Virus record (IMG/VR): IMGVR_UViG_3300022868_000009
Coordinates: 62,001-126,000 of that record
Strand: one strand, 5' to 3'
Length of the DNA stretch: 64,000 bases
In this document: positions 2,867 to 57,293 of the stretch, in pieces
How positions within the stretch are numbered: the first letter of the stretch is position 1
How the letters are laid out: every line of letters starts with the position of its first letter
The notes under the pieces: model-generated
The model's database searches: none
Seen by the model: only the letters and a program-made list of their open reading frames with translations
Told to the model about the DNA's origin: nothing
Position numbers and translations under genes: made by a program

Positions 2867-2875
2867 ATTGCAAAG

Positions 2876-4377: not shown

Positions 4378-4381
4378 ATTT

Positions 4382-5754: not shown

Positions 5755-5765
5755 AATTATTTTAT

Positions 5766-8164: not shown

Positions 8165-8165
8165 A

Positions 8166-9299: not shown

Positions 9300-9316
9300 T
9301 TAATTTTTAATTGTTT

Positions 9317-9922: not shown

Positions 9923-9924
9923 AA

Positions 9925-10578: not shown

Positions 10579-10619
10579 TTCATTTCATTTATTTTATTTC
10601 CCATTTAGAATGAGAATAT

Positions 10620-13175: not shown

Positions 13176-13510
13176 CTTATAAAAACGTCTATTTCTTTTT
13201 CTTCTTTGTGTAATAATATACAAGATCTATGAAAACCGTCTATTATTACATAAATATCATCTTTTTCAACACACTCAATATATTTATATTTGTTTCCTTT
13301 ACTTAAATAATCGAATTCTTTCATTAATTTTTCGAACTTTTCGACTGAATGATCAGGTTGTTTTGCAATTTTAAGATATTCGATGTAAGGTTCTATATTA
13401 CCTAGTAAAAATTGATAATGTGGAGACTCTTCTAATTTTATCAATTTCACAGTAGGATAGAAAGTTATTAAATTTACCCGTATATCATCTATATTAATTT
13501 TTTTAATCAT
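13172..13510 (-). CDS. ParB/Srx-like small protein
   Basis: YVIIDGFHR motif. Confidence 0.55.
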   Translation of the reverse strand: MIKKINIDDIRVNLITFYPTVKLIKLEESPHYQFLLGNIEPYIEYLKIAKQPDHSVEKFEKLMKEFDYLSKGNKYKYIECVEKDDIYVIIDGFHRSCILLHKEEKEIDVFIR

Positions 13511-14163
13511 TTAATCATATTTCTATGTTGTTTATTAGGTTCACCCATATAATCAAAGGCTTCACCAACAAATTGTTTACCTTCCCTTTTAGATGGAAAA
13601 GGTTTTTTATTGATATTATAATTATGAAATTCATCATGAACCATAACATCATCCTTTATAATATTATAGATTTTTTGTTTTAAAAAATTTTGATCTACTT
13701 GCCAAAAGTCACCCATATCATACTCCTCAATCATTTTTTTCATATCCTTCAATATATCACCTCTAACTCCCCACATACCACCTAATATTTCAGCACCATG
13801 CCAAGGATGGTCTCTCATAATATGAAAAGATTTATCACTTTCTAACCATTCATCAACAGCCAATTTTTCCCTCATATTTAATCTGCTATCCGTATCTCTA
13901 CTAATCATAACATCAACATCTGGTTCAGATGCAGGATAAAATCTCCAAAACATTCCTCTCCAGTCTCCTTCCTCATCCATCATTATAATTTCATTATTTT
14001 CTATTTCTTGTATCTTCTTAATAGTTGTTTTAGATGTTGACTGACCACAATAATATCTAGCAACCCAACCTGGATATATTTCACTCAATAATTCAGCATT
14101 TTTAATCGCACCAATATTATACTTCGGATCTTTACCCCATAAACAAAAACTTATTACTTTCAT
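13507..14163 (-). CDS. Putative glycosyltransferase
   Basis: ISFCLWG, MFWRF, SRDTDSR, MRDHPWH, GGMWG, DQNFL. Confidence 0.65.
   Translation of the reverse strand: MKVISFCLWGKDPKYNIGAIKNAELLSEIYPGWVARYYCGQSTSKTTIKKIQEIENNEIIMMDEEGDWRGMFWRFYPASEPDVDVMISRDTDSRLNMREKLAVDEWLESDKSFHIMRDHPWHGAEILGGMWGVRGDILKDMKKMIEEYDMGDFWQVDQNFLKQKIYNIIKDDVMVHDEFHNYNINKKPFPSKREGKQFVGEAFDYMGEPNKQHRNMIK
13521..13722. repeat. ~200 bp direct repeat, copy 2
   Basis: Matches 11122-11323. Confidence 0.85.
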
Positions 14164-14733
14164 TTATTCTATATCTTCTTTTTTAAAAGCGTGAGATGAC
14201 CAACCAGCCATACCAACTTTTTTAGTTACTGAAAAACCTTTTTCTTCCAAAAAATGATAAATATCGACATTATTTAAATGTAAATTTTCAAAATATATGT
14301 TCTTTATATTATATTTTTCAAAATCAATACTCTTAATAATTAAATCATCAGTGCCTTCGGCGTCAATATATAAAATATCAATATCTAGTAACTTATATTT
14401 ATCGAACAACAGATTAATCGTTAAACATTCCACGTCAAGTCTAACTATACCATCTTTACCATAACCATGTTTTAGAATATGGTTCATTTTTAAAGATGCT
14501 ACCTCATAAAGGGGTCCATCATTTTCATGATAAAAAAATGTCATCTTGTCTCTTAGTGTTGGAAAAATCACAACATTTTCTAAATGTTTATTATTAACCC
14601 AATCATAACATTCTAAAATTTTATCATTGTGTACCATTAATGGCTCAACCAAAACCAAAATATTTGGTTGATCAGTAATTATTTTAGTTAAATCATCATT
14701 TGCTTGACAAACACCTATTTGCACAATATTCAT
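14164..14733 (-). CDS. FkbM-like methyltransferase
   Basis: IVQIG, LVEP, IDILYIDAEGTD, IYFE. Confidence 0.75.
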   Translation of the reverse strand: MNIVQIGVCQANDDLTKIITDQPNILVLVEPLMVHNDKILECYDWVNNKHLENVVIFPTLRDKMTFFYHENDGPLYEVASLKMNHILKHGYGKDGIVRLDVECLTINLLFDKYKLLDIDILYIDAEGTDDLIIKSIDFEKYNIKNIYFENLHLNNVDIYHFLEEKGFSVTKKVGMAGWSSHAFKKEDIE

Positions 14734-15426
14734 TTAATTAATATCTTCTTTTTTAATACCAAATCTATTACTTAATCTTAATTCAAAAAACTTAGCATCT
14801 ATAGGATAATATTTGTGATTTGAAACATACAACTCATCCATTTTCCCTCTGTGTTCTGGAATATCTGGATGTTCATGTTTAATTATAACTTCATCAATAA
14901 AAGTTTGTCTTTTAAATCTACTTGCAACTCTTGTAAACTCATCATCAGAATAAAAGCTCTTATAACCTGGATGATAAATATATCCAAATCTATCGTAATA
15001 TTTCTTACCTAATATACATAAGGTATTAAGATCTCTTCTGTTTCCATCAAAAAACCATAAAACACCATCGGTGTCAGGATAATATTTCTTCATATTATCT
15101 CTGATTTTTGTATCATAACCTTGCATTTTTGGCATCATATCATCGGAAGCTAATAAAACAATATCCCAATCATCTTCAAAATCGTTCATATCAGCATTTA
15201 TAGCTTCTATTTTAGTCTTTGAAAAACCAATAAATATATCGACATTTTCGCATATTCCCTCAATTCTATCTAAAACTTTATCATTATTCATAGTTTTATC
15301 ATCATCATCAATTGAAATAAGAAAATGTGTATTTTCTTTATCATCCAATAAATCGAGATATTTTTGAAATGAATCAAAAAATTTCTTAGGTCTATTTCTG
15401 GTTGGGAATTTAATTAATAATTTCAT
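14734..15426 (-). CDS. GT-A fold glycosyltransferase
   Basis: KFPTRNRP, LASDDM, DDEFT, IKHEHP. Confidence 0.65.
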   Translation of the reverse strand: MKLLIKFPTRNRPKKFFDSFQKYLDLLDDKENTHFLISIDDDDKTMNNDKVLDRIEGICENVDIFIGFSKTKIEAINADMNDFEDDWDIVLLASDDMMPKMQGYDTKIRDNMKKYYPDTDGVLWFFDGNRRDLNTLCILGKKYYDRFGYIYHPGYKSFYSDDEFTRVASRFKRQTFIDEVIIKHEHPDIPEHRGKMDELYVSNHKYYPIDAKFFELRLSNRFGIKKEDIN

Positions 15427-16135
15427 TTTTTATTTTTATTTTTATAAAATCTATAATAGACATAGGTGAAAAATGATCGTATGAATAACTTGCACCAAAA
15501 TCACTATCGCCAAATTTTGGATCATAATATAATTTTACACCGTTTGTTAGTCTTGTATCTATTTTTAATATAATCATATTATTTTTATCTAAATTAAATC
15601 TACTAATTAAATCATTCACATAAAACATCGAAGATTCTAAATTATCAAAAACATAGATTCTATCTGGATGTTTTTCTATTTTATTTAATGAATTTGGATA
15701 AACTCCATTTTTATTTATTTTATCCAAAAATTTCTTTTCTGTTACGTGAAATAAGTAAATAGGAATACCTTTTAATTCACTATCAAATTTTTTATTTAAT
15801 TCTATATTAATATATTTATAATCACCAAACCATTCATAATTATTTGGTAAATCTTTACCATTTTCACCAGTATCTAATTTCCAATATGAAGTATTATAAC
15901 CAGAAACATTTAAAATTGATTTAATATAATCAATTAAATCTTCAGTAACATTATTTCTCAGTATTTTTATTTTAAATGAAAAAGAATCAAAAGAAATTTC
16001 AAAATTTTCACGTTTTAAAATACCCGCCAAATCTTCATAATCCCAACTACTAATTAAACCTTCTTTAATAAGAGAATTATTAAATTCGTCAATCATATCT
16101 CTTTGAAAGATCTTTCTATAATTTAAAATTTTCAT
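15410..16135 (-). CDS. Hypothetical protein with C-terminal ADP-ribosyltransferase/Tpt1-like HxT domain
   Basis: YLFHVT...INKNGVYP...HPDRIY...YYDP. Confidence 0.5.
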   Translation of the reverse strand: MKILNYRKIFQRDMIDEFNNSLIKEGLISSWDYEDLAGILKRENFEISFDSFSFKIKILRNNVTEDLIDYIKSILNVSGYNTSYWKLDTGENGKDLPNNYEWFGDYKYINIELNKKFDSELKGIPIYLFHVTEKKFLDKINKNGVYPNSLNKIEKHPDRIYVFDNLESSMFYVNDLISRFNLDKNNMIILKIDTRLTNGVKLYYDPKFGDSDFGASYSYDHFSPMSIIDFIKIKIKNEIIN

Positions 16136-17051
16136 TTTTATTTTCAATTAATTTCTCAAAGATTTTTAAAGAAACTTTATTACCAATATCTTCATTATAT
16201 GATATATAACCACATAATCGTTCATATATTTCATTGTTTTTAACATCTTCAATAATATCATCTAAAATATCATTCACATATTCTATAAATTCTTGGCTTT
16301 TTTGTTTAAAAAAATTATTCCAATTACTATAATATTTAATTAAATCACCATCAAATTGATCACCAATAGATTCACTGAATTCTTTAGTAAATTCTAAAAT
16401 ATCTGGTTTTTTAATAAATTCTAAATAATCAAAATTTTGTAATTTTGTTAAAGCTTCATATACAAATGACTTTTTAAATATTTCAAATAATTTATCTTTA
16501 TCTATAATATTAATATATCTATACATTTCATATAACATATTATGTCTAGTAATTAACTCATGTTCTAATGATAAATATACCAACTCGACAAATTCAGGGC
16601 ATTTATTTTTAAATTTAGAAATTGTCATAGATTTTACAAATTCTTGAATTTCAACATCACCAGAAACTGTATATATATCATATATATGTCTAATTTCATG
16701 TGATATAATAGACATTAAATAATCTATATCTATTTTATCATCAACAATTTTTACAGGTATAATAACTGGTTTTTCAGGTTCAGTTAATATATCATATATA
16801 TTTATATTGGAATAATATGGTTCTTTATTTCCTTTTTGGTAATTAATAACAATATCTATATTAAAGGAATCTATTTGATAATTATTATTAAAAAAATTGT
16901 CACCGTTATTAATTATATCTTTTCTTATTAATGAATATATTTTTTTAAGTAAAACTGGAAAGCTTTTATCTTTAAAATCTTCAAATATTTGACTATTTTC
17001 ATCTATAAATTGGTTCCATTTTTTAATAGATTGTTTTTTATTCAATTTCAT
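16116..17051 (-). CDS. Hypothetical protein with HExxH metallopeptidase-like motif
   Basis: IISHEIRHIYD followed by a downstream Glu. Confidence 0.45.
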   Translation of the reverse strand: MKLNKKQSIKKWNQFIDENSQIFEDFKDKSFPVLLKKIYSLIRKDIINNGDNFFNNNYQIDSFNIDIVINYQKGNKEPYYSNINIYDILTEPEKPVIIPVKIVDDKIDIDYLMSIISHEIRHIYDIYTVSGDVEIQEFVKSMTISKFKNKCPEFVELVYLSLEHELITRHNMLYEMYRYINIIDKDKLFEIFKKSFVYEALTKLQNFDYLEFIKKPDILEFTKEFSESIGDQFDGDLIKYYSNWNNFFKQKSQEFIEYVNDILDDIIEDVKNNEIYERLCGYISYNEDIGNKVSLKIFEKLIENKNENFKL

Positions 17052-30880: not shown

Positions 30881-31117
30881 ATGAAAAAACAAAAAACATT
30901 TACAATTGATATGGATATTTGGGAAAAATTTAATGAAATAAGCAAACAAAAATCTATCAATAAATCTTTATTAATAGAAAATCATTTAAGAGATATCATT
31001 TATTTAAACGAAAACCCAAAACATTTTATTATCGTTGGAGATGAAATAAAATTATTAAAATATTCATTAAATGAAAATGAAATTTATATATTAGACGCAA
31101 AACCAAATATAAAATAA
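30881..31117 (+). CDS. Ribbon-helix-helix DNA-binding protein upstream of endonuclease
   Basis: MKKQKTFTID...F...SKQKSINKSLLIE. Confidence 0.6.
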   Translation: MKKQKTFTIDMDIWEKFNEISKQKSINKSLLIENHLRDIIYLNENPKHFIIVGDEIKLLKYSLNENEIYILDAKPNIK

Positions 31118-32694
31118 TGATATTAACCAAATCAGTCAAAGTTAAAGTGCATTCATCTATGGTAAAATACTATCAGAGTAAAGGATATGAATGCAAATAT
31201 AAAGATATAATTGATATTAAAGTAAAAGATCTAAAACAAAAAAGTACAGTAATTGTCGAAGTTGAATGTGATATATGTGGTGAAAAGAAAAATATACCAT
31301 TGTTTAGATATAACAACAATTTTAATAATAAAAATATGTATGTTTGTTCAGCTTCTTGCGCACAAACAAAAATAAAATTAACTAAATTAGAAAATCATGG
31401 AGATGAAAATTTTTCAAATATTAAAAAACGAAAAGAAACATGCAAAGAAAGATACAACAACGAAAATTATAAGAATATTGAAAAAAAGAAAGAGACAAAT
31501 ATAGAAAGATATGGAGTTGAACACGTGATAATGAATGAAAATATAAAAAATAAAAGACTAGAAACATATAAAAAATTATATGGTGAAGAGCACCCAATGA
31601 AAAATAATGATATAATTCTAAAGAAAAAACAAACATCTAAAAATAAACATGGTGATAAAAATTATAACAACATACAAAAAACACTCAAAACAATTAAAAA
31701 TAAACAACTTCAAAATATTGAAAAATATAATATTAAAGCTATCAATTATCAAGATTTTCTTTTTGAAGTTGAATGTGATAAAGGACACAATTATAAAATA
31801 TCATTCGATTTATTATACAAAAGACATAAATATAATGTAGAAAAATGTACAATATGTAATCCTATTGGAATCAAATATTCAAATAGTGAGTATAATTTAT
31901 TACAATTCATTAAAGAAAATTATAATGGTGAAATAATAAAAAATTCAAGAAAAATAATAAAACCGTATGAATTAGACATATTTTTACCAAATTTAAATTT
32001 AGCATTTGAATATAATGGATTATGGTGGCACAATGAATTATATAAAGATAAAAATTATCACAAAACTAAAAGTGATTTATGTGATAAAAATAATATACAA
32101 TTAATACATATATGGGAAGATAACTGGATTTATAAACAAGATATAGTTAAATCTATGATATTAAATAAATTAGGTAAAACACTAAATAAAATATATGCAA
32201 GAAAATGTGAAATTAGAGAAATTAAAAATAATGATTTAATAAAACAATTTTTAAACAATAATCATATACAAGGTTTTGTTGGTTCGAGTGTAAAATTGGG
32301 TTTATATTACAATAATGAATTAACTTCTTTAATGACTTTTAAAAAAGATAATAATAATTTTGAATTAAACAGATTTTGTAATAAGTTAAATACTAATGTT
32401 ATTGGTGGTGCATCTAAATTATTTAAATACTTTACTAAAAATTATAACTTTTATGAAATAAAAACATTTGCAGATAGAACTTATTCAAATGGAAACTTAT
32501 ATTTTAAGATGAATTTTAAAATAGGTAAATTTATAAAACCAGATTATTATTATATTGTTAATGGTATTAGAAAACATAAATTTAATTTTAGAAAACAAAA
32601 AGATAACATAAAAACAGAACATGAAATTATGTTAGAAAAAAATATTTATAGAATATATGACGCAGGTAAATATAGATTTACCTACTCATTATAA
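31117..32694 (+). CDS. Free-standing putative homing endonuclease
   Basis: CDIC zinc motif, ERYGVE repeats, ELDIFLP..NLAFEYNGLWWH, IHIWED, conserved RIYDAG end. Confidence 0.8.
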   Translation: MILTKSVKVKVHSSMVKYYQSKGYECKYKDIIDIKVKDLKQKSTVIVEVECDICGEKKNIPLFRYNNNFNNKNMYVCSASCAQTKIKLTKLENHGDENFSNIKKRKETCKERYNNENYKNIEKKKETNIERYGVEHVIMNENIKNKRLETYKKLYGEEHPMKNNDIILKKKQTSKNKHGDKNYNNIQKTLKTIKNKQLQNIEKYNIKAINYQDFLFEVECDKGHNYKISFDLLYKRHKYNVEKCTICNPIGIKYSNSEYNLLQFIKENYNGEIIKNSRKIIKPYELDIFLPNLNLAFEYNGLWWHNELYKDKNYHKTKSDLCDKNNIQLIHIWEDNWIYKQDIVKSMILNKLGKTLNKIYARKCEIREIKNNDLIKQFLNNNHIQGFVGSSVKLGLYYNNELTSLMTFKKDNNNFELNRFCNKLNTNVIGGASKLFKYFTKNYNFYEIKTFADRTYSNGNLYFKMNFKIGKFIKPDYYYIVNGIRKHKFNFRKQKDNIKTEHEIMLEKNIYRIYDAGKYRFTYSL

Positions 32695-33579: not shown

Positions 33580-35226
33580 ATGTTATTAACAAAGAATATT
33601 AAAATTAAAATAAATAATAGGTATATAAAATATTATCAAAATCTTGGATATCAGGTAAAAGGCGGTCAAGAATGTGAAATAAAAATAGAAGATTTATCAA
33701 AAAAAAGCCACGCTTTTGTTGATGTTAAATGTGATATATGTCAAGAAGAAAAAACAATTAAATATTATAATTATACTGAAAATATACTAAATCAGGGTTT
33801 TTACACTTGTAAAAAATGTAAACATCATAAGACAAAAATCACAAATCTAGAGAAATATGGTGTAGAATGTACATTACAATCTGATGATGTTTTAGAAAAG
33901 ATAAAAAATAAAAACATAGAAAAATTTGGCACAGACCATTATTCAAAAACAAATGAATTTAAAGAAAAAATAAAAGAGACAAATCTAGAAAAATATGGTG
34001 TTGAAAGTAATATGCAATCAATCGAATTTAAGGAAAAATCTATATTATTTAATCTGAAAAGTTACGGTGTTGATCATTATTCAAAGACTAATGAATTTAA
34101 AGAAAAAGTAAAAAAAACAAATTTAGAAAAATATGGTGTTGATCATTATTCAAAAACTGATGAATTCAAGGAGAAGTTGTCTAAAAACCATTTTTTAAAA
34201 CTTAAAAAAGAAAACAACAATCTTAAAGAGATAAATGGTGATGAATATGTGATATATTGTGATAAATGTGATAAAGATTATACTATTCATAAATGGTTAT
34301 ATAAAAATAGAAAAAAGAAATATAAAACTAATACTTGTTTATATTGTAATCCTATAAATTCTTCTAAATCTGGAATGGAATTAAAATTATTAGAATTTAT
34401 AAAAGATAATTATAATGAAAAAATTGTTTATGGTAATAGAAAAATTATACCACCTAAAGAATTAGATATTTATTTACCAAATTTAAAATTGGCATTTGAG
34501 TTTAATGGTGTATATTGGCACAACGAATTAAACAAACATAACAAATATCATTTAGAAAAAACAGAAAAATGTCTAGAAAAAGGAATACAATTAATTCATG
34601 TTTTTGAAGATGATTGGATTTATAAACAAGATATAGTAAAATCTAGAATTTTGAATTTAATTGGAAAATCTAAAAAAATATTTGCTCGAAAATGTGAAAT
34701 TAAATTAGTCAATGATAATAAAGTTATTAGAAATTTTCTAGATGAAAATCATTTACAAGGGTTTGTAGGGAGCAAAATAAAATTGGGTTTGTATTATAAT
34801 GATGAATTAGTAAGTTTAATGACTTTTGGAAATTTGAGAAAACCTTTAAATCAGTCAAAAAAGGATGGGTCATTTGAATTATTAAGATTTTGTAATAAAT
34901 TGAGCATTTATGTTATTGGTGGTGCTTCAAAATTATTTAATTATTTCTTAAAAAACTATGAAATTTGTGAAATAATAAGTTATGCGGATAGAAGTTGGAG
35001 TAATGGAAATTTATATGAAAAACTTGGTTTTGAATTTATACATAAAACACAACCTAACTATTATTATATAATAGGCAATCTTAGAAAACATAGATTTAAT
35101 TTCAGGAAAGATAAATTAATTAAAGAAGGTTTTGATTCAAATAAAACCGAACATGAAATAATGTTAGAAAGGGAAATATATCGAATATATGATAGCGGTA
35201 GTTTAAAATATAGTTATTTAATATAA
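33580..35226 (+). CDS. Free-standing putative homing endonuclease (paralogue of 31117 and 38168)
   Basis: TNLEKYGV repeats; ELDIYLP..KLAFEFNGVYWH; RIYDSG. Confidence 0.8.
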   Translation: MLLTKNIKIKINNRYIKYYQNLGYQVKGGQECEIKIEDLSKKSHAFVDVKCDICQEEKTIKYYNYTENILNQGFYTCKKCKHHKTKITNLEKYGVECTLQSDDVLEKIKNKNIEKFGTDHYSKTNEFKEKIKETNLEKYGVESNMQSIEFKEKSILFNLKSYGVDHYSKTNEFKEKVKKTNLEKYGVDHYSKTDEFKEKLSKNHFLKLKKENNNLKEINGDEYVIYCDKCDKDYTIHKWLYKNRKKKYKTNTCLYCNPINSSKSGMELKLLEFIKDNYNEKIVYGNRKIIPPKELDIYLPNLKLAFEFNGVYWHNELNKHNKYHLEKTEKCLEKGIQLIHVFEDDWIYKQDIVKSRILNLIGKSKKIFARKCEIKLVNDNKVIRNFLDENHLQGFVGSKIKLGLYYNDELVSLMTFGNLRKPLNQSKKDGSFELLRFCNKLSIYVIGGASKLFNYFLKNYEICEIISYADRSWSNGNLYEKLGFEFIHKTQPNYYYIIGNLRKHRFNFRKDKLIKEGFDSNKTEHEIMLEREIYRIYDSGSLKYSYLI

Positions 35227-38167: not shown

Positions 38168-39979
38168 TTAATTCTTAAAAATGTATTTATAATTACCACT
38201 ATTATATATTCTATAAATACCTCTTTCTATCATTATTTGATGTTCACTTTTATCTAAATCAAAACCTTCTTTAACCAACACGTCTTTTCTATATCCAAAC
38301 CTATATTTTCTCACACCATCTACTACATAATAATAATTTGGTTTAGAAATATGAGATAATTCAAAACCTAAATTTTCATATAATTTGCCATTTGAATGTG
38401 ATCTATCTGCATAACTTATTATTTTTTTAAAAAAATAATTTTTAGTAAAATGTTTAAACAATTTTGAAGCACCACCAATAACATTAGTATTTAACTTATT
38501 ACAAAATCTTATAAGTTCAAATTCACCTTCTACACTAGAAGAATTTTGAGACTTTCTTTTTTTACCAAAAGTCATTAAAGAAACTAACTCATTTTCATAA
38601 TAAAGACCTAGTTTAATACTAGAACCAACAAAACCTTGTAAATGATTATCATCTAGAAATTTTCTTATCAATTTATTATCTTCAATAACTTTAATTTCAC
38701 ATTTTCTTGCATAAATTCTATTTGGTGTTTTACCTATTTTGTTTAATATTATGGATTTAACTATGTCTTGTTTATACAACCAATCATCTTCCCAAATATG
38801 TGTTAGCTGAACACCTTTTTTAAAACAATTATCTGTTTTATTTAAATGATAATTATTATCTTTATTTAATTCGTTATGCCAATACAAACCATTAAATTCA
38901 AAAGCTAATTTCAAATTTGGTAAATAAATATCTAATTCTAATGGTTTAATAACATCTCTATCTGATGTTTCAATGACACCAGTATAATTTTCTTCAATAA
39001 AACTTAATAATTGTATTTCTAATCCTGATGTGTGTTGATTAATTGGGTTGCAAATAGTACACAATTCAGTTTTACATTTAACTCTATTTGAAAACAAGGA
39101 TGAATTAATAATATAATCATGTCCTTTATCACATAATATTGTATATTCTTTATTATCAAAATCAATATTCAAAAAATTTAAATAACTATAATTACTTAAA
39201 AGATATTTTTTAGTTCTTTTTCTATTATTCTCTTTAATATTTTTTATAACTTTTTCTGTTTGAAAATAATTTTCAACACCATATCTTTCTAAGATTGTAG
39301 TTTTTCTTTTTTCTTTTAATTCATTAGAATATGATGGATTTTCAACACCATAATTTTCCATTAATGATTTTATTGATTTCTCTCTAATTTCTTCTGATTG
39401 TTGAGGATACTCTACACCATACTTTTCTAAATTTGTTTTTTTAATTTTATCTTTTATTTCTTCTGATTCAAACGGATTTTCAACACCATATTTTTCTAGA
39501 TTTGTTTTGGATATTTTATCACGTATCTCTTTATTAGATAGAGAAAATTCAACACCATACTTTTCTAGATTTGTTTGTTTTTGCTTTCTTTTTACACACT
39601 CATTTTGAGTAAAATGTTCGACACCATATTTTTCCAAACTTGTTTTTTTAACTCTATCAACATATTCCTCAGTCTGTGTATAATATTCACTGCCATATTT
39701 TTCAAATGTTGTCTTTTTAACTTTTTCTTGAGCACACTTAGAACTACAAGCATAAAACCCACCATTATTAATATTTTTAACATATTTTTGATACATTAAA
39801 TCCTTTTCATTATTACAAAAATCACATTTTACTTTTATTTTTACATGACTACCATCAGATAAATATTTAGGATGTATATTTAAAATATCTCCCAATTGTA
39901 CATCTTTCGAATATTCTTCTTTTAGTTTACTTAAATTTCTTTTTGTTACTTTAATTAATGTTTTTTCTGTTAAAATCAT
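38168..39979 (-). CDS. Free-standing putative homing endonuclease
   Basis: Many TNLEKYGVE repeats; ELDIYLP..KLAFEFNGLYWH; RIYNSG. Confidence 0.8.
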   Translation of the reverse strand: MILTEKTLIKVTKRNLSKLKEEYSKDVQLGDILNIHPKYLSDGSHVKIKVKCDFCNNEKDLMYQKYVKNINNGGFYACSSKCAQEKVKKTTFEKYGSEYYTQTEEYVDRVKKTSLEKYGVEHFTQNECVKRKQKQTNLEKYGVEFSLSNKEIRDKISKTNLEKYGVENPFESEEIKDKIKKTNLEKYGVEYPQQSEEIREKSIKSLMENYGVENPSYSNELKEKRKTTILERYGVENYFQTEKVIKNIKENNRKRTKKYLLSNYSYLNFLNIDFDNKEYTILCDKGHDYIINSSLFSNRVKCKTELCTICNPINQHTSGLEIQLLSFIEENYTGVIETSDRDVIKPLELDIYLPNLKLAFEFNGLYWHNELNKDNNYHLNKTDNCFKKGVQLTHIWEDDWLYKQDIVKSIILNKIGKTPNRIYARKCEIKVIEDNKLIRKFLDDNHLQGFVGSSIKLGLYYENELVSLMTFGKKRKSQNSSSVEGEFELIRFCNKLNTNVIGGASKLFKHFTKNYFFKKIISYADRSHSNGKLYENLGFELSHISKPNYYYVVDGVRKYRFGYRKDVLVKEGFDLDKSEHQIMIERGIYRIYNSGNYKYIFKN

Positions 39980-49751: not shown

Positions 49752-50119
49752 TTAATATTCTCAAAGAATTCTTTAACAGGTAATAATATATAACGTGTGC
49801 GCGCGCATGCGTATATAAAAAAATTTTTCAAAAGATTAAAATTTTTAAAAATTTTATTTCATTAATATTATCTTTAACGGTAATACTTATTTTCCTAAGA
49901 ATAAAGAATTTTCAACTTATTGAATTTTTTAGTATAATTAGTATAATCTTTTAATTTTAGAAAAAAGTGACTTTTTAAGTCAAATATATAATTTTCACAC
50001 TTTTATAAATTTTTAAAATTTTTAAACTTTTTAAAATTTTGAAAGTACAAGAAAATAGATTACGAAAAAATAATATTTTTTTAAAGATTTTTCGAAATCA
50101 AAACGTTCTTTAAAATATT

Positions 50120-51050
50120 GTAAAATATAGTCTGTGCTTGGGCAGACGTTCATCTTCGGATGGAGCAGATAAAACATCGTAAGGTGTCGAAAGAGAGGAA
50201 GGTCACTTATTCTCGCCAATAGTCTTCGGATTATGGTCAATCTAAGCAAGTCTCATTTTTGTCTTGACCAACAAGACAGCCTCAATAGAAAGGGGATAAG
50301 ATGAAACAACGTGAGTAACGATCTTTGGTAAGAATAAGATGGCTCAATTGCCCGCAAGGGGAACAAAAGTTATCAAATATAGAATGGGGACATTCCAATA
50401 TCGTTTAATCCACTCATTAAGTGTTCGTTGATAGATAAGAGATAGAATAGTAGTTCGAATGTGGAAAGTTAGAGCATTATTCAGTTTCAAAGGTGTTGAA
50501 AGATGTCTTAACAAACGGCACAGTAAGTCCTCCGGGCTGAAACGCATACGAAGGGTCGTATTTTGTAAGGTGAAACTTATGAATCGGTGGACAGGCACTT
50601 TGTGGTGATATCATTTTTTATTAGCTCACAATGGTAGAGCAGTAGTATTCTAACTAAAGGTAGATGGTTCAATTCCATCATAAAAAAAGCAAAGTCCCTG
50701 TCCGTCTGTTAAGTAAAGGTGCTTAAAACTTTACACTTCGGTGAATAAAGTGGATTCAAAGCTCGCAAGGTAGAGAATCTTTGATACAGTAGCCTCAACT
50801 TTTAACCCTAGCAGGTTATTAACGCCACGATAGTGGTGAGTGTACGCAAAATATCGAGTAACTTAATAGTACTAGTGATGTAACCACATAAAAAGTTACA
50901 GTACAGCTGGTGTACATAGTTGCCTTTCGAGGGATTATGTGGACAATTCAGGAACGAAGAATAGCAACTCTTTGATAATCTGAAGAAAGCAAAACATATA
51001 ATAAACTGTGTGTTTTACCAGTATGACAGTTTTTAGTCTCAAAATTGTTT
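50120..51050 (+). ncRNA. Large ornate ncRNA, GOLLD-like (boundaries approximate)
   Basis: No credible ORF; GC-richer than flanks; UUCG/GCAA hairpins at 50151-50162, 50219-50234, 50351-50360, 50734-50743, 50923-50932; embedded tRNA-like element; terminal stem with AGUCUC loop at 51026-51048; next to tRNA genes. Confidence 0.6.
50615..50687 (+). pseudogene. tRNA-like element inside the large ncRNA (all-AU acceptor stem, 6-nt anticodon loop)
   Basis: TTTTTAT/ATAAAAA acceptor, GCTC/GAGC D-stem, GATGG-TTCAATT-CCATC T-arm. Confidence 0.75.
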
Positions 51051-51450
51051 CTCTATCAAGATAAAAACCTTGACGTGGTGATAGAGCTTTAAACTAATAT
51101 TTATCAAATGTGAAAAAAGTAGTAGAAATTAAAAGACGCAACACGCAGCCCGTTCTCTGCGCTACTTCACAAAAATGTGAACGATAAAAATCTTCACATT
51201 TAAATACACCAAGAATAACACCATCACTGTAGCCCTAAAGGAGTGATGTTGTCGCATAAAAACGATTAGTGTTAGTGTGTGTTTGAGAAGACGACGGGGG
51301 ATTTCACAAAAGTAACATGAATCAAGTAGTGTGAAATAAGAAATTCCTCCAAGTTTTCTCGGAAAATTTTTTTATGCAAGAAATAATTTGTATATTGTCA
51401 AAAATAGAGAATAAATATTTAATATATAAAAAATAGTAAAAACAGAAACA

Positions 51451-51537
51451 ATGAATAATACTTTTAAACATAATAGTTCATCTTTTCATAAGTGGTTTAG
51501 CCGCTTCGGATCGGGAATGTTATGCCTTAAAAGTTAA
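51451..51537 (+). CDS. Putative attenuator leader peptide 1 (MNNTFKHNSSSFHKWFSRFGSGMLCLKS)
   Basis: 28-codon ORF ~30 nt after TAATATATA motif; overlaps antiterminator strand; F/H/W codons match downstream tRNAs. Confidence 0.7.
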   Translation: MNNTFKHNSSSFHKWFSRFGSGMLCLKS

Positions 51538-51566
51538 GATTAAAAAATATTAATCAACAAAGGGAC

Positions 51567-51604
51567 AAACTCGATTCTAACAAGATTCGGGTTTTTTGTT
51601 TTTT
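51567..51604 (+). terminator. Intrinsic terminator upstream of tRNA-His/Trp/Phe (attenuator)
   Basis: AAACTCGATTCT-AACA-AGATTCGGGTTT then T-tract. Confidence 0.8.
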
Positions 51605-51626
51605 ATAAACGTTCTTAAAAATATAT

Positions 51627-51702
51627 GGTGGTTATAGTGTTAGTGGTAGCACGGCAGGTTGTGGTTCTGTTAGGATGGATTCAAATTCCATTAATCACCC
51701 CA
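51627..51702 (+). tRNA. tRNA-His(GTG), encoded G-1 and CCA
   Basis: Cloverleaf; GCAGG-TTGTGGT-TCTGT anticodon arm. Confidence 0.92.
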
Positions 51703-51712
51703 AATTTAACAC

Positions 51713-51783
51713 AGGTCTATAGTGTAACGGTAGCATAAGTGATTCCAAACCACTTGGTCCGGGTTCAAATCCTGGTAGGCCTG
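51713..51783 (+). tRNA. tRNA-Trp(CCA)
   Basis: AGGTCTA/TAGGCCT acceptor; TTCCAAA loop; CCGGG-TTCAAAT-CCTGG. Confidence 0.92.
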
Positions 51784-51852
51784 CGAGAAGTTTAAATATG
51801 GTTAAATGAAGGATGGTTAAAAGGTAGAAAAATGAAATATTAATACAAATTT

Positions 51853-51925
51853 GGAACCGTGGTGTAGGTGGTCTGCACGATACTCTGAAGAAGTATAGGT
51901 ACCCGTTCAACTCGGGTCGGTTCCA
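51853..51925 (+). tRNA. tRNA-Phe(GAA)
   Basis: GGAACCG/CGGTTCC acceptor; ATACT-CTGAAGA-AGTAT. Confidence 0.9.
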
Positions 51926-52002
51926 CTTTAAACTTTTAAATTTTAATATATATTAATGTGAAGAAAGAACCAGTTTTAATGAAAAATAATAAAAATTAAC
52001 AA

Positions 52003-52749
52003 ATGAAAAAATATACACAATTTAGTAAATCTTTAGAAAAAATCAATCAAAATATGGAATTATTTGAAAAAGCTATCGATCAAAATCAAAAAGAAAAAAT
52101 AGATAGATATATTAATGCAAACAATTACAAAAAAGTTCTATCAGAACTAAAACAAATTATTTTTAATTTAAAAAAAGAAATTAAAAATTCCAATTTTGAT
52201 GATTTCATTTATAAACAGAACAATAAAGATATAGAAATAATATATAATCCGACTATTCGTGGTATTTTAACCTATTTAGATGGTAAAAGAGTAGAATTTG
52301 AATATGGAAAAGAAGAGAATCAACAAAAAATCTTAAACACTATCTATATTGATGGTGAAAGAGACCCATTTTTAGATATAACTATTCAACCACCATTTAA
52401 TCAGATACATATTAATAATGGTTTGCCAGTTTTTATGAAAGGTCTAGGATTAGGTAAAAAAGTTTACAAAAAACTAATTAAAGATTTTGGTTATCTTTCT
52501 TCTTTTAAAGGAATAAAACCTTCTATTGAAAGTGATTTGGTTTGGGATACTTTAGCTGATGATAGAGAATTGTTCACTTTTGTGAATGATAACAATATCA
52601 TTTGTTTTTGGAATGAAGTAGATTATGATATTATAATTATTAAATTGAAAGAATTTTACAAAATAAAAGGACAAAAAATCTTTGATAACGATTTTAAAAA
52701 GTTATATAACTTAACTGATGAAAAAATAGAACAAATAATTAATATATAA
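52003..52749 (+). CDS. Hypothetical protein, possible GNAT-like motif
   Basis: MKGLGLGKKVY resembles acetyl-CoA-binding motif A. Confidence 0.5.
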   Translation: MKKYTQFSKSLEKINQNMELFEKAIDQNQKEKIDRYINANNYKKVLSELKQIIFNLKKEIKNSNFDDFIYKQNNKDIEIIYNPTIRGILTYLDGKRVEFEYGKEENQQKILNTIYIDGERDPFLDITIQPPFNQIHINNGLPVFMKGLGLGKKVYKKLIKDFGYLSSFKGIKPSIESDLVWDTLADDRELFTFVNDNNIICFWNEVDYDIIIIKLKEFYKIKGQKIFDNDFKKLYNLTDEKIEQIINI

Positions 52750-52767
52750 AGAAAATCAATTTTAAAC

Positions 52768-53016
52768 ATGAAAATTAAAAGATATAATGAATCATTAATT
52801 GATAATGATAATAACACTAGAGAAGATTTCAATGAAGAAATTGATGATCTAATATCAGAATTAAAGATAAGATATAATAATTTTAATAATTTAATTGATT
52901 CATACAAAATAATAGAAAAAAGTAAAACAGAAGAATGGGAAAAAGTTAGAAATGAACTAAGAGGCGCATTTGATGGTTTTAAAAATGAATTAATACAAAA
53001 AATTAAAAAATTTTAA
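52768..53016 (+). CDS. Hypothetical protein (MKIKRYNES tag)
   Basis: ORF after TAATATATA motif. Confidence 0.55.
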   Translation: MKIKRYNESLIDNDNNTREDFNEEIDDLISELKIRYNNFNNLIDSYKIIEKSKTEEWEKVRNELRGAFDGFKNELIQKIKKF

Positions 53017-53019
53017 ATA

Positions 53020-53094
53020 ATGATTATAATTAACATAAATAGTAAATCGAAAAAGAATAGTCGTCTGAAAACGGCTCGGAATTGTATTACCTAA
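53020..53094 (+). CDS. Putative attenuator leader peptide 2 (MIIININSKSKKNSRLKTARNCIT)
   Basis: 24-codon ORF; AGT AAA TCG AAA AAG AAT AGT cluster matches downstream Lys/Ser tRNAs; contains 1:2 hairpin and antiterminator strand. Confidence 0.7.
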   Translation: MIIININSKSKKNSRLKTARNCIT

Positions 53095-53116: not shown

Positions 53117-53146
53117 AAACCGAGTCTGAAAAGATTCGGTTTTTTT
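53117..53146 (+). terminator. Intrinsic terminator 2 nt before tRNA-Lys (attenuator)
   Basis: AAACCGAGTCT-GAAA-AGATTCGGTTT plus T-tract. Confidence 0.85.
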
Positions 53147-53148
53147 AT

Positions 53149-53226
53149 TGGCCATTAGCTCAGTAGGTTTAGAGCATCTGCCTTTTAAGCAGAGAGTCCA
53201 GGGTTCGATCCCCTGATGGCCAACCA
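53149..53226 (+). tRNA. tRNA-Lys(TTT) with encoded CCA
   Basis: TGGCCAT/ATGGCCA; TCTGC-CTTTTAA-GCAGA; CAGGG-TTCGATC-CCCTG. Confidence 0.95.
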
Positions 53227-53228
53227 AT

Positions 53229-53301
53229 GGATCTGTAGCTCAGTTGGTAGAGCTTCTGCCTTTTAAGCAGAAAGTCCAGGGTTCGAGTCCGACTAGGTCC
53301 A
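53229..53301 (+). tRNA. tRNA-Lys(TTT), second copy with mispaired T-stem
   Basis: GGATCTG/TAGGTCC; same anticodon arm; T-stem CAGGG/CCGAC pairs only 2 bp. Confidence 0.7.
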
Positions 53302-53305
53302 CTAA

Positions 53306-53420
53306 GGCTTATAACAAATAGGTTGTATTTATAGAGCATTTGTCGGGTTACCGCATGTCACTAAAATGTATATTTTAAGAGTTACTAGAGATATATGAGG
53401 TTCGAATCCTTAATAAGCCA
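53306..53420 (+). ncRNA. tRNA-like RNA (acceptor stem and T-arm intact, enlarged non-canonical centre)
   Basis: GGCTTAT/ATAAGCC-A; TGAGG-TTCGAAT-CCTTA; 115 nt. Confidence 0.65.
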
Positions 53421-53424
53421 CTAT

Positions 53425-53508
53425 GGAAAGCGTCCGGTTGGACGAGGGGCTACTCTTGAAAAGTAGTAATGGGTTACACCATTAGGGGTTCGAATCCCTT
53501 GCTTTCCG
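53425..53508 (+). tRNA. tRNA-Ser(TGA)
   Basis: CTACT-CTTGAAA-AGTAG; long variable arm; G discriminator. Confidence 0.93.
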
Positions 53509-53512
53509 CTAT

Positions 53513-53600
53513 GGAAGAGTACCCAAGTTGGTGAAGGGGCTGGTTTGCTAAACCAGTAGGTCTGAAATACGGCGCGTGGGTTCGAGCCCCACTTCTTCCG
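53513..53600 (+). tRNA. tRNA-Ser(GCT)
   Basis: CTGGT-TTGCTAA-ACCAG; long variable arm; G discriminator. Confidence 0.93.
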
Positions 53601-53648
53601 CAATTAGGTTTGAAACTCAGTTGGTGACCTACTAAGAAAGATATTTCA

Positions 53649-55340: not shown

Positions 55341-55625
55341 ATGCAAGATAAATGTAAAATATGTGGTCGTAATGAAACAACATCATTTCATCATTTAATA
55401 CCAGTAACATTACATACTAAAAAGTGGTTCAAAAAAAATTACGAAAAAGACTATATGAAATCACACGGTATAGACTTATGCAAACAATGTCATAAGGCTA
55501 TACATAAATTTTGGGATGAAAAAACTTTGGGCAAAAAATTTAATACATTAAAAAGTTTATTAGAAAATCAAAAAATTAAAAAACACATTGAATGGGTTAT
55601 AAAACTAAAACATAATAAAAAATGA
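55341..55625 (+). CDS. Small HNH-like protein
   Basis: CKICGR...FHHLIP...LCKQCHKAIH. Confidence 0.7.
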   Translation: MQDKCKICGRNETTSFHHLIPVTLHTKKWFKKNYEKDYMKSHGIDLCKQCHKAIHKFWDEKTLGKKFNTLKSLLENQKIKKHIEWVIKLKHNKK

Positions 55626-55903
55626 CAAAAGACAAAACTAAAGACGAATCTAAAAACGAATCTAAAGAAAAAGAAGAAAATTTATACTCAATTATTGTAT
55701 ATAATGACGAAGTTAATACATTTGAACATGTTATTGGTTGTCTTATTAAATACTGTAAACATGAATTAACACAAGCAGAACAATGTACCATGATTATACA
55801 CAATAATGGTAAATGTGATGTTAAAAAAGGCACATTTAAAGAATTAGAAACTCCTTATTATGCTTTACTTGATTCTGGGTTATCTGCTGAAATTGAAAAT
55901 TAA
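55622..55903 (+). CDS. clpS: ClpS N-degron adaptor (Bacteroidota type)
   Basis: IIVYNDEVNTFEHVI..L...C.H...QAEQC..IIH.NGKCDVK.G. Confidence 0.88.
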   Translation: MTKDKTKDESKNESKEKEENLYSIIVYNDEVNTFEHVIGCLIKYCKHELTQAEQCTMIIHNNGKCDVKKGTFKELETPYYALLDSGLSAEIEN

Positions 55904-55985: not shown

Positions 55986-57293
55986 ATGAGAAATATACAA
56001 AAATTATCAGAAAAAGAATTAATAGTACATTTAAAATCTATCTATAATAAACAGATAGATATTTATGATAAATTTGAAAAAACAGGTGAAATTGAACCAA
56101 TTATTACCGATTTTGATGATCAAGATGCATATAAATATTTTATGCAATATGCAATCTTTAAAACTCACCCAAACGCAATAGTAAAATTTAAATTTTTTAA
56201 CCGTGGAAAACATAAATTTCCAGTCGGTTCAGATTATCATATTAAAAAACAAATAGAATCTATGAAAAATCTTAGATTCACTCCTGAAATAGAAAGATCA
56301 TTTAGAAAAAAATTTTCAAATATGAAAGGTGAATCTTATTTTGATGAATCTTTTTATGGTTTTTTAAGAAGTTATAGATACGATCCATCTGAAGTTAAAG
56401 TAACTCAAACAGGAGAAGATATCGAAATAGAAATAACTGGTTCTTGGTTAAAAACAATTTATTGGGAAACACAAATAATGCCGATTTTAACAGAAACTTG
56501 GTATATGTTAACTGATCAATATAAAAATATTCATAATTTTGATCATCTATATGATACACACAGAGACAAATATCGAAGTTTTATAACAGCCGAATCTAAT
56601 ATTGCAGAATTTGGTTTAAGAAGAAGATATTCAAAACTAATACAAGAATTTATCAATATACATTTTATGTGGGAATCACCAGCTAGATATATTGGTACGT
56701 CTAATTGTATGTTCGCTAGAAAATTTAATGTTAAAGCCATTGGAACACAAGCTCATGAATGGATAATGTTTCATGCCGCAAAATATGGACCAGAACTAGC
56801 AAATAAGATATCTTTAGAAAATTGGGTTAAAGTTTACAGAGGAGAATTAGGTATTGCGTTATCTGATACTTATGGTACAGACAATTTCTTAAAATCATTT
56901 GATACTTTACATAGTAAATTATTTGATGGTGTTAGATGGGATTCTGGTGATTTTAAATTATTTACTGATAAAATAATTGGACACTATAAATCATATGGAA
57001 TTAATCCTAAATCCAAAACAATTGTCTATTCTGATGGTATAAATTCATTTTTAAAAATACGAGATATTATAAGATATGCAAGTGATAAAATTAAATGCAC
57101 GTTAGGAATTGGTACTTATTTAACAAATGATATTGGTGTACCAACTATGAATATTGTTATTAAAATGACAGAAGCTAAACCTGAAAAAATGGATTGGAGA
57201 TATTGTATAAAGACATCTGATTCATCTGGTAAATATACTTATACTGACAAAAAAACATTAAACAGATACTTAGAAGATTTGAATATAAATTAA
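55986..57293 (+). CDS. pncB: Nicotinate phosphoribosyltransferase
   Basis: DAYKYFMQ, EFGLRRR, GTSN, GTQAHEW, ALSDTYG, GVRWDSGD, YSDG, GIGTYLTND, NIVIKM. Confidence 0.92.
   Translation: MRNIQKLSEKELIVHLKSIYNKQIDIYDKFEKTGEIEPIITDFDDQDAYKYFMQYAIFKTHPNAIVKFKFFNRGKHKFPVGSDYHIKKQIESMKNLRFTPEIERSFRKKFSNMKGESYFDESFYGFLRSYRYDPSEVKVTQTGEDIEIEITGSWLKTIYWETQIMPILTETWYMLTDQYKNIHNFDHLYDTHRDKYRSFITAESNIAEFGLRRRYSKLIQEFINIHFMWESPARYIGTSNCMFARKFNVKAIGTQAHEWIMFHAAKYGPELANKISLENWVKVYRGELGIALSDTYGTDNFLKSFDTLHSKLFDGVRWDSGDFKLFTDKIIGHYKSYGINPKSKTIVYSDGINSFLKIRDIIRYASDKIKCTLGIGTYLTNDIGVPTMNIVIKMTEAKPEKMDWRYCIKTSDSSGKYTYTDKKTLNRYLEDLNIN

Follow-up and report, generated by a model that had tools for sequence, protein, structure and literature searches.

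Leader peptides are known to control transcription attenuation in the trp, his, pheA, leu, thr and ilv operons of Enterobacteria, as well as in pheST with its pheM leader. T-boxes control synthetase or amino-acid genes by a different principle, binding uncharged tRNA via a specifier codon and the T-box bulge without any need for translation. Why phages carry tRNA genes of their own, and when these are used, is a long-standing question. One described association is that between GOLLD RNA and tRNA islands in phages (bioRxiv 10.1101/2024.12.08.627333, PMC12990946).

Here we analyze a stretch of 64,000 nucleotides from an uncultured phage (IMG/VR record IMGVR_UViG_3300022868_000009, positions 62,001 to 126,000), referred to below as the window. 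It likely contains two serial leader-peptide transcription attenuators, each gating a tRNA cluster, a reading that rests on computation only. An initial annotation knew of no account of codon-matched attenuation of phage tRNA genes. We likewise met with no account of tRNA genes under leader-peptide control in the full-text literature that we searched.

Two leaders and their tRNA clusters

Leader ORF 1 (51451-51537; 28 codons plus stop, translation not shown) precedes tRNA-His(GTG) at 51628-51702, tRNA-Trp(CCA) at 51713-51784 and tRNA-Phe(GAA) at 51853-51926; these and all other features discussed here lie on the plus strand. The ORF, its 4 Phe, 2 His and 1 Trp codons, among them TTT CAT AAG TGG TTT at 51484-51498, and the three tRNAs that follow were all described correctly by the initial annotation. 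Its proposed control region, F-H-K-W-F, was too narrow. The control codons extend over 51463-51507, reading F K H n S S S F H K W F S r F, and thus also include Lys and Ser codons. Thirteen of these 15 residues are cognate to the operon's tRNAs, and the core run to S17, F-K-H-n-S-S-S-F-H-K-W-F-S (12 of 13), covers all five amino acids of the operon's seven tRNAs, with each Ser codon readable by phage tRNA-Ser(UGA) or tRNA-Ser(GCU). In a composition-preserving shuffle the run has p = 0.0007, and it is matched by 1% of the 290 small ORFs in the window, a comparison whose window sizes were picked after data inspection. We consider it likely that leader 1 senses all five operon amino acids, Lys and Ser included, the sensing itself being inferred. 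Both leader ORFs of the window are preceded by A-rich sequence without a Shine-Dalgarno motif, as are 70 of its 72 genes.

The ORF is followed by terminator 1, a hairpin at 51570-51591 with the T-tract TTTTTTGTTTTTT at 51592-51604. The intrinsic terminator annotated at 51567-51604 is thereby retained as 51570-51604, though it is weak: the stem contains a U.U mismatch, its predicted energy lies between -6.6 and -8.6 kcal/mol and falls to -14.1 once the A/U-tract extension is included, and a simple consensus scan misses it. Competing with it is antiterminator 1 (2:3), predicted by RNAfold from the helices 51508-15/51570-77, 51518-21/51564-67 and 51525-28/51560-63. In the outermost of these, GGAUCGGG (51508-15) pairs with CUCGAUUC (51570-77), the 5' arm of the terminator, and the pairing continues via UGUU/GACA and CCUU/AAGG to reach -16.6 kcal/mol when the terminator 3' arm is omitted. 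It exceeds dinucleotide shuffles of the upstream sequence at p = 0.005-0.01 (z = -4.0 at p = 0.005), so that the annotated pairing with its extensions stands. Three other intergenic terminators in the window have no comparable upstream pairing partner in the same kind of shuffle control. The anti-antiterminator (1:2) hairpin spans the ORF (51460-51534) at a predicted -19.7 kcal/mol (RNAfold), which contradicts the earlier statement that it is weak. For the leader as a whole, the predicted fold has -37.7 kcal/mol (z = -3.6). Little separates the terminated from the read-through state in predicted energy (-37.4 versus -31.9). As long as the 3' arm has not been synthesized, the antiterminator is predicted to be the most stable fold even in the absence of a ribosome, and the default state of the switch is therefore uncertain.

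Between the T-tract and tRNA-His lies a conserved spacer with GTTCTTAAAAATA (51605-51627). An independent promoter at this place would have spoken against the annotated attenuator; no consensus promoter was found in the 22 nt before tRNA-His. Since a spacer-like motif also precedes a tRNA cluster without a terminator, an unrecognized phage promoter or processing site in the spacer is not excluded.

Two protein ORFs of 248 and 82 aa (52003-53016) separate the first tRNA cluster from the second. Leader ORF 2 (53020-53094; 24 codons plus stop, translation not shown) has its ATG 3 nt past the stop of the preceding ORF, and its control codons at 53041-53061, AGT AAA TCG AAA AAG AAT AGT, read S K S K K n S. 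Six of the seven residues are cognate (p = 0.004, composition-preserving shuffle) to the tRNAs downstream, two tRNA-Lys(UUU), tRNA-Ser(UGA) and tRNA-Ser(GCU) at 53149-53601, and a comparable run occurs in only 1 of the 290 small ORFs (0.3%). The 1:2 hairpin is short, with AGUCGU pairing to ACGGCU over only 6 bp (53059-53076). Antiterminator 2 (53073-79/53120-26, 53082-86/53114-18 and 53088-94/53099-105) exceeds shuffles at p = 0.0025-0.007, and terminator 2 (53117-53146; stem 53120-53139, T-tract 53140-53146) is predicted at -10.5 kcal/mol. The stop codon lies 25-32 nt before the terminator in the two leaders. That the operon contains another leader of the same layout, matched to different tRNAs, favors the initial annotation's reading.

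Between leaders 1 and 2, an A:U pair of the antiterminator is replaced by C:G while the terminator 3' arm is unchanged, and a homologous RNA segment is used in different reading frames. In low-G+C metagenome contigs, CCGAnTCT....AGATTCGG followed by a T-tract is a generic kind of terminator hairpin; terminator similarity alone is therefore no proof that the two leaders are paralogous. Scans for the terminator pattern AAGATTCGGKTTTTT returned mostly chance matches, and those for a combined antiterminator and terminator pattern only chance matches in G+C-rich contigs.

Further upstream, the 17-nt motif GAAAAAAGTGACTTTTT at 49959-49976 recurs as an identical 17-mer about 60 nt upstream of the leader ORF in megaphage LR756501.1. 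Its region is possibly the promoter of the whole RNA operon, a role that is inferred only; sigma-70-like hexamers are present at 49909-49947. Within the window TAnnTTTG, a promoter motif of Bacteroidota, shows no enrichment, and leader 1 is preceded only by a near-match, TAATTTG, at 51384-90. A probable GOLLD RNA occupies 50100-51016, comprising a G+C-rich 5' part from about 50100 and the conserved 3' domain at 50548-51016. The latter matches Rfam RF02032 (full model) with 93.9 bits and E = 2e-24, below the gathering score of 150, with the conserved motifs aligned, and the G+C content of the region is 0.36-0.40 versus a background of 0.2. A tRNA with anticodon CUA (50614-50688, ARAGORN and Rfam tRNA) is embedded in the GOLLD linker and falls in an insertion region of the alignment. 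With this linker tRNA and the adjoining tRNA island, the window would share the association reported for phages. The attenuators, in contrast, are independent of GOLLD, the LR756501.1 orthologue and other leaders having none nearby; for this reason we rejected GOLLD as a component of the mechanism.

In IMG/VR, searches with neighboring proteins (the 248-aa ORF, DUF6150 and NAPRTase) retrieved nothing but this phage itself, in copies that do not differ. Twelve contigs with the 248-aa protein were inspected, and in five places the match to the window is base-for-base. With no difference among the copies found, population variation offers nothing to test. Around remoter homologues of the 248-aa protein, synteny is lost and tRNAs are absent.

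Recurrence in a megaphage and in unrelated viral contigs

An orthologous leader with the same order of elements precedes tRNA Trp/His/Phe/Lys/Ser in the 735-kb megaphage LR756501.1, the only cultured-phage comparison in which blastn of the region gave more than tRNA matches. Here the run S-K-H-S-K-H-F-S-S-S-S-K-W-F is cognate at 14 of 14 residues (p = 0.0002). The leader's Ser codons TCT, AGT, TCA and TCC cannot be read by the adjacent tRNA-Ser(CGA), so that the Ser match is one at the amino-acid level only. The arms have diverged from those of the window and yet still pair (UUCGGGGUU with AACCCCGAA), and pairing is likewise kept with different sequences in the viral contig L206. A four-sequence covariation count was dropped because MAFFT shifts the register of the LR756501.1 arm; the arms were tabulated instead. 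The spacer with GTTCTTAAAAATA is identical between the window and LR756501.1 and better conserved than the ORF, and peptide sequences are not conserved beyond the control-codon classes. Ten other tRNA clusters of LR756501.1 have no such leader.

The arrangement is not confined to this pair. In the viral contig L208 the run F-D-F-A-F-E-F-A-A-E-A-D precedes tRNA Phe, Glu, Asp, Pro and Ala, and in L344 K-m-I-R-K-Q-I-R-K-Q-I-Q precedes tRNA Ile, Lys, Gln and Arg. Across loci, leader residues score 62.3 against their own tRNA set and 31.3 +/- 5.3 against the sets of other loci (p <= 2e-4, permutation), an excess that persists with the window excluded. Per-locus shuffles give a Fisher-combined p of 1.3e-12, or 1.1e-9 without the window, and an independent replication sample, the only one for which this statistic was set in advance, gives 6.7e-7. 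Some loci entering these statistics are mutually homologous (L168/L196/L259, L162/L265 and L344/L351). Structure follows the same division: the median antiterminator z is -4.0 in codon-matched leaders versus +0.4 in the remainder (p = 6e-5), and the stop codon lies 23-36 nt from the terminator in 12 of 12 leaders. Motifs of the type GTTCTTTGA, related to the window's spacer, are present in other leaders, the spacer motif being summarized as GTTCTT(T)RAA. Promoters are situated 5' of the leader ORFs and not behind the terminator: TAnnTTTG boxes in L206, L208 and L227, and TTGACA-N18-TATAAT in L259, which like L344 is of the sigma-70 type. Conservation in relatives and covariation of leader codons with downstream anticodons, on which the initial annotation had made its reading depend, thus come out favorably: codon classes and switch are retained in LR756501.1, and across unrelated viral contigs the leader residues correspond to the tRNA sets that follow.

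Proposed mechanism and rival explanations

These results support codon-matched attenuation in a broader form than initially proposed; translation of the ORFs, ribosome stalling and regulated termination or read-through remain inferences without direct evidence. In the proposed mechanism, a ribosome would translate the short ORF as RNA polymerase moves through the leader, and the control codons of the ORF would be read by the downstream tRNAs (Phe, His, Trp, Lys and Ser in leader 1, Lys and Ser in leader 2). When charged tRNA from host and phage together runs short, decoding would slow and the ribosome stall on the codon run, opening the 1:2 hairpin and allowing the next segment to pair with the terminator 5' arm. 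This antiterminator would preclude the terminator, and the tRNA genes would be transcribed. Under fast decoding the ribosome would instead run on to the stop where, 25-32 nt short of the terminator, it would cover the inner antiterminator helices, so that the terminator forms and transcription ends. The outcome would be a negative feedback, a sensor of tRNA supply. As the switches are nested, the distal Lys/Ser cluster would be transcribed only with both open.

Three rival explanations were weighed. The first, which we regard as very unlikely, holds that the ORFs are chance ORFs in an A+T-rich spacer and the terminators ordinary ones that end upstream units, GOLLD RNA and the ORF at 52768-53016, while the tRNAs are transcribed by leak or from their own promoter. 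Small ORFs are indeed abundant (a 3.5-kb stretch holds 46 with 20 aa or more), the terminator type is generic in low-G+C contigs, and 43 of 238 sampled viral tRNA clusters are preceded by a hairpin plus T-tract, mostly without a matching ORF. However, the codon runs of both leaders are improbable under composition-preserving nulls and recur in the orthologue, in unrelated loci and in the replication sample. Moreover, significant antiterminators occur in the window only at tRNA-preceding terminators, and across loci they go together with codon matching.

Alternatively, the switch could be real but flipped by an RNA-binding protein of phage or host, or by uncharged tRNA in the manner of T-box leaders, the ORF being incidental. 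The alternative structures are significant by themselves, the predicted energies need no ribosome and translation of the ORF is unproven. Nevertheless, we give this explanation very little credence: even at E <= 10 the leaders match neither the T-box nor any further Rfam family, a single specifier could not serve five tRNA species as one leader does, and the runs of cognate residues and the constant 23-36 nt between stop and terminator would be left unexplained. Also very improbable in our view is that the ORFs encode functional peptides, or that leader translation controls the processing or stability of the tRNA precursor and not termination; a stalled ribosome that exposes or masks an RNase site near the conserved spacer is one possible form of this. 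In its favor, the window and LR756501.1 share the spacer GTTCTTAAAAATA without a change, and tRNA precursors need processing at exactly this place. The peptides, however, are unconserved apart from the control-codon classes, the frames differ between leaders 1 and 2, and what is conserved is a canonical hairpin with T-tract and its competing helix. Attenuation by leader peptides remains the preferred reading.

A bolder version of the attenuation reading, which we hold to be more likely than not, is that several phage lineages carry unrecognized sensors of tRNA supply. Multi-amino-acid leader peptides would list the downstream tRNA array and be coupled to a terminator/antiterminator switch, and the tRNA genes would be transcribed only when decoding of those very codons slows. 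Such slowing may result from decay of host tRNA, shut-off, cleavage by host defenses or infection of a host whose tRNA pool fits badly, and nested attenuators may grade the response within one operon. If true, phage tRNA expression would be demand-driven and not constitutive, with the ribosome reading a short list of the codons served, and the co-regulated tRNAs within an array could be predicted from sequence only. There is a possible link to host defenses that target tRNA, and the leaders, compact and programmable, might find use as sensors of decoding speed.

Comparison with known systems

Rfam offers no counterpart for these leaders. A cmscan of 51000-51640 gave no match to the His, Trp, Phe, Leu and Thr leaders (E <= 10), and no leader family was found in six other leader-bearing loci. 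The T-box family (RF00230) was likewise without a match at leader 1 (E <= 10) or in the other leader loci searched. The E. coli tRNA-Phe genes were considered as a cellular case with an attenuator-like leader and rejected, pheV having a plain promoter directly upstream. With T-boxes the leaders would share the choice between terminator and antiterminator in answer to the state of a specific tRNA, but each phage leader serves several tRNAs.

The closest likeness is to the attenuators of biosynthetic operons. In both, a short ORF, whose translation is inferred here, contains a run of regulatory codons immediately 5' of the antiterminator arm; competing 1:2, 2:3 and 3:4 helices end with the intrinsic terminator; and the stop codon lies at a fixed short distance before it. 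Unlike those attenuators, the leaders described here are phage-encoded, two of them are nested in one operon, and a single leader can mix as many as five amino acids or more, mirroring a whole tRNA array. If our reading is true, leader peptides can combine many amino acids, and classical attenuation as known from amino-acid and synthetase operons extends to tRNA genes. The phage leaders would gate neither enzymes nor synthetases; since the regulated genes are the tRNA genes themselves, the product would feed back directly on the step that is sensed.

Two coding leaders in one tRNA operon

The initial annotation, made from sequence alone, had proposed at 51451-51925 a leader-peptide attenuator of phage tRNA genes whose codons match the tRNAs that follow. 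Its basic observations held: a 28-codon ORF (51451-51537) carries Phe, His and Trp codons, and tRNA-His(GTG), tRNA-Trp(CCA) and tRNA-Phe(GAA) lie downstream. The control set of His, Trp and Phe was drawn too narrowly, as the ORF also carries Lys and Ser codons. At positions 5-17 it reads F-K-H-n-S-S-S-F-H-K-W-F-S, where 12 of 13 residues belong to the five amino acids that the operon's seven tRNAs carry.

The terminator hairpin of this leader 1 (51570-51591) contains a U.U mismatch, reaches merely -6.6 to -8.6 kcal/mol and was not called in a consensus terminator scan of the window. It is directly followed on its 3' side by TTTTTTGTTTTTT, and an A-tract on the 5' side lengthens the stem to -14.1 kcal/mol. 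The leader as a whole (51440-51627) has a predicted folding energy of -37.7 kcal/mol, below that of dinucleotide shuffles (z = -3.6). Once the terminator 3' arm is omitted, RNAfold pairs GGAUCGGG (51508-51515) with CUCGAUUC (51570-51577), and this antiterminator continues via UGUU/GACA and CCUU/AAGG to a total of -16.6 kcal/mol. The antiterminator pairing of the initial annotation thus held as a thermodynamic prediction. Its description of the 1:2 hairpin, the anti-antiterminator, as weak failed: in the full-length fold the control codons and the antiterminator segment of the ORF both lie in one long, imperfectly paired hairpin (51460-51534, -19.7 kcal/mol). The terminator 5' arm is more complementary to the upstream 120 nt than expected from shuffles (p = 0.01; in a separate test z = -4.0, p = 0.005), and no such partner was found for three further terminators between genes of the window (shuffle p = 0.2-0.9).

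A second leader lies ahead of the tRNA cluster that comes next on this strand, namely Lys(UUU), Lys(UUU), Ser(UGA) and Ser(GCU) at 53149-53601. Its terminator (53120-53146, -10.5 kcal/mol) is likewise significantly complementary to an upstream segment (p = 0.007 against shuffles; z = -4.75 in a separate test), with GGCUCGG (53073-53079) pairing with CCGAGUC (53120-53126), followed by UUGUA/UACAA and UACCUAA/UUAGGUA. The leader 2 ORF (53020-53094, 24 codons) starts 3 nt past the stop of the preceding gene and carries the run S-K-S-K-K-N-S (AGT AAA TCG AAA AAG AAT AGT), whose Lys and Ser are precisely the amino acids of the four following tRNAs. Its Ser codons cover both Ser anticodons, and Lys and Ser are the only cognate residues of the ORF, from which Phe, His and Trp are absent. 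The terminator 3' arm is AAGAUUCGG in both leaders, and one antiterminator pair differs on both sides, being A:U in leader 1 and C:G in leader 2. The two ORFs run through the homologous RNA segment in different reading frames, so what was kept is the RNA and the codon classes, not the peptide. Since the leader 1 run spans all five amino acids and that of leader 2 Lys and Ser only, nesting is suggested: the first switch would sense all downstream tRNAs, the second only the distal cluster.

Among the 290 small ATG ORFs in the window, 1% reach the run of leader 1 and 0.3% that of leader 2, in a comparison whose residue-window sizes were picked after the data had been seen. With a fixed statistic (best counts summed over windows of 6, 10 and 14 residues), nucleotide shuffling of the ORF gave p = 0.0007 for leader 1 and p = 0.004 for leader 2.

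Codon matching in other viral contigs

Scanning IMG/VR for T-runs that precede a tRNA bearing a common D-arm returned 111 loci. After tRNA calling, clusters with a hairpin and T-tract within 55 nt upstream were kept (43 of 238), and ATG ORFs ending near the terminator were taken as leader candidates. Scored against their own tRNA sets the leaders reached 62.3, compared with 31.3 +/- 5.3 for the sets of other loci (p <= 2e-4); excluding the window, the values were 51.5 and 29.2 +/- 5.1. With the tRNA set defined more narrowly, in an earlier version of the test, p was 0.0005 (0.0035 without the window), and composition-preserving shuffles per locus, Fisher-combined, gave 1.3e-12 (n = 20; 1.1e-9 without the window). 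These statistics are optimistic because some loci are mutually homologous. A replication sample, obtained by a second scan with a different D-arm pattern and an unchanged pipeline, yielded p = 6.7e-7 over 8 loci. The predicted correspondence of leader residues to the downstream tRNAs elsewhere held in both samples.

Clear cases occur in unrelated contigs of the first sample. L208 (tRNA-Phe, Glu, Asp, Pro, Ala) carries the run F-D-F-A-F-E-F-A-A-E-A-D, L227 (Glu, Asp, Met, Leu) E-D-D-L-L-E-D, and L206 (Lys, Lys, Val, Tyr, Tyr), whose arms and spacer resemble those of the window, Y-Y-f-K-K-s-Y-K-K-Y. In L202 a 12-tRNA array includes all residues of D-N-F-V-N-W-F-G-F-N-r-A-A-D-K-D-G-G, and the array of L168 and L259 likewise covers L-L-P-G-N-T-G-P-A-T-E-D. 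L162 and L265 (Phe, Asn, Ser, Cys, Thr) have runs of F, S, N, C and T. The replication sample added L344 (Ile, Lys, Gln, Arg), with K-m-I-R-K-Q-I-R-K-Q-I-Q, and another new case, L322.

When cultured and deposited phages were searched by blastn with the leader, the sole match, at the terminator and spacer, was in the uncultured 735-kb phage LR756501.1. Here a 31-codon ORF carries S-K-H-S-K-H-F-S-S-S-S-K-W-F (14/14 cognate, p = 0.0002). With it come, in order, a long hairpin across the ORF (-21.2 kcal/mol); an antiterminator in which UUCGGGGUU pairs with AACCCCGAA (-26.7 kcal/mol as long as the 3' arm is missing); a terminator of -15.9 kcal/mol; the spacer GTTCTTAAAAATA, which is the same as in the window; and a single cluster of tRNA-Trp, Arg (intron-containing), His, His, Phe, Lys and Ser. 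Sequence and register of the arms have changed while pairing is retained, and the five amino-acid classes are common to both leaders. This orthologue thus keeps the codon classes and the predicted switch, as the initial annotation would require. One discordance is that the Ser codons of this leader are not read by its tRNA-Ser(CGA), and ten other tRNA clusters in a 50-kb portion of this genome lack a leader of this kind.

Genomic setting, neighbouring RNAs and promoters

IMGVR_UViG_3300022868_000009, of which the window is part, is an uncultured jumbo phage of 344.6 kb with identical copies in several samples and a G+C content of about 0.25. The window appears to be read with the standard code, with ORFs covering 89% of it and TAG terminating 7 of 72 ORFs. 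Only 2 of 72 genes have a Shine-Dalgarno-like motif, the others having A-rich upstream regions instead, as is typical for phages of Bacteroidota. The window also encodes three DUF7487-domain paralogues (31117-32694, 33580-35226, 38168-39979) and, on the minus strand (1513-17051), a long series of ORFs of about 260 aa. Two auxiliary genes adjoin the tRNA island, a ClpS-like ORF (55622-55903; precomputed Pfam match on an identical contig) and a nicotinate phosphoribosyltransferase (55986-57293). The 248-aa protein between the tRNA clusters (52003-52749) belongs to a family without Pfam domain that also occurs in other huge-phage contigs, a 3.8-kb one (L005) holding three tandem copies.

A probable GOLLD RNA (Rfam RF02032, 50100-51016 overall) is located just 5' of leader 1; the match at 50548-51016 (E = 2e-24, 93.9 bits) does not reach the gathering score of 150. 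Its linker contains a tRNA with anticodon CUA, of the amber-suppressor type (50614-50688), in agreement with publications that place GOLLD RNAs close to tRNA islands and tRNAs within the GOLLD linker (10.1101/2024.12.08.627333; PMC12990946). In the other leader-bearing loci examined, the attenuators are independent of GOLLD. From the end of the GOLLD model to leader 1 extends a G+C-rich stretch of about 330 nt with several hairpins (51017-51380; fold z-score -2.8 on the plus and -1.35 on the minus strand) and no match in Rfam. A tRNA-like sequence between tRNA-Lys and tRNA-Ser (53306-53421) is assigned by ARAGORN, at a relaxed threshold only, to tRNA-Tyr(GUA) with a 29-nt intron, and is not called by Rfam. 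Three RNA elements of other kinds occur in other phage tRNA arrays (L162:8182-8474; L265:3273-3477; L269:2649-2767, the last in LR756501.1). One RNA resembles RNase P (E = 3e-14, short of the gathering score), another is a group I intron whose 58.8 bits exceed gathering, and the third is a tRNA-Arg(UCU) with an intron; L162 and L265 also have a tRNA(CUA).

TAnnTTTG boxes, the canonical Bacteroidota -7 element, precede the leader ORFs of L206 (with TTTG 20 nt further 5'), L208 and both L227 leaders. In L259, TTGACA-N18-TATAAT ends 5 nt ahead of the ATG, suggesting a leaderless message. Leader 1 is preceded by a near-match alone, TAATTTG at 51384-51390. An identical 17-mer, GAAAAAAGTGACTTTTT, occurs 5' of GOLLD (49959-49976) and 5' of the LR756501.1 leader ORF (L269:2291-2307), so leader 1 may be co-transcribed with GOLLD; this hints that GOLLD separates the leader from a promoter region common to both phages. 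An independent promoter between terminator and tRNA-His would have refuted the initial annotation, and no consensus promoter was found in that 22-nt gap. A motif GTTCTT(T)RAA(AATA) is conserved between T-tract and first tRNA (window 51605-51627, L269:2516-2542, L206, L227, L202), identical in the window and LR756501.1 and also present ahead of one LR756501.1 tRNA cluster without terminator. This spacer may act in processing or contain a promoter that was not recognised.

Geometry of the proposed switch and relation to known attenuators

Antiterminator complementarity has a median z of -4.0 in codon-matched leaders (n = 12) and is absent from other terminator-preceded tRNA clusters (median z +0.4, n = 21; Mann-Whitney p = 6e-5). 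In 12/12 leaders the end of the stop codon is 23-36 nt from the terminator 5' arm, and the antiterminator arm starts within the ORF, right after the run. A ribosome usually covers about 12-15 nt on the 3' side of its A site. Inferred from this, a ribosome decoding the final codons of the run in the window would reach approximately the start of the antiterminator arm, and one at the stop codon would mask the inner antiterminator helices. The observation of the initial annotation is confirmed and its attenuation interpretation supported, by computational evidence only: without experiments, and with the default state of the switch uncertain, the window leaders and their relatives are likely functional ribosome-dependent attenuators of tRNA transcription.

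By sequence, the leader region matches neither the T-box family nor any of the Rfam leader families. No earlier description of leader-peptide control of tRNA genes was found in the literature searched, which left out most subscription journals, and novelty is therefore unproven. In architecture the leaders agree with classical leader-peptide attenuators. In contrast to these, the window leaders sit in a phage and target tRNA genes, so that the regulated product acts back on the very step being sensed; several amino acids are combined in one phage leader, mirroring a whole tRNA array, and in the window two nested switches are found in one operon.
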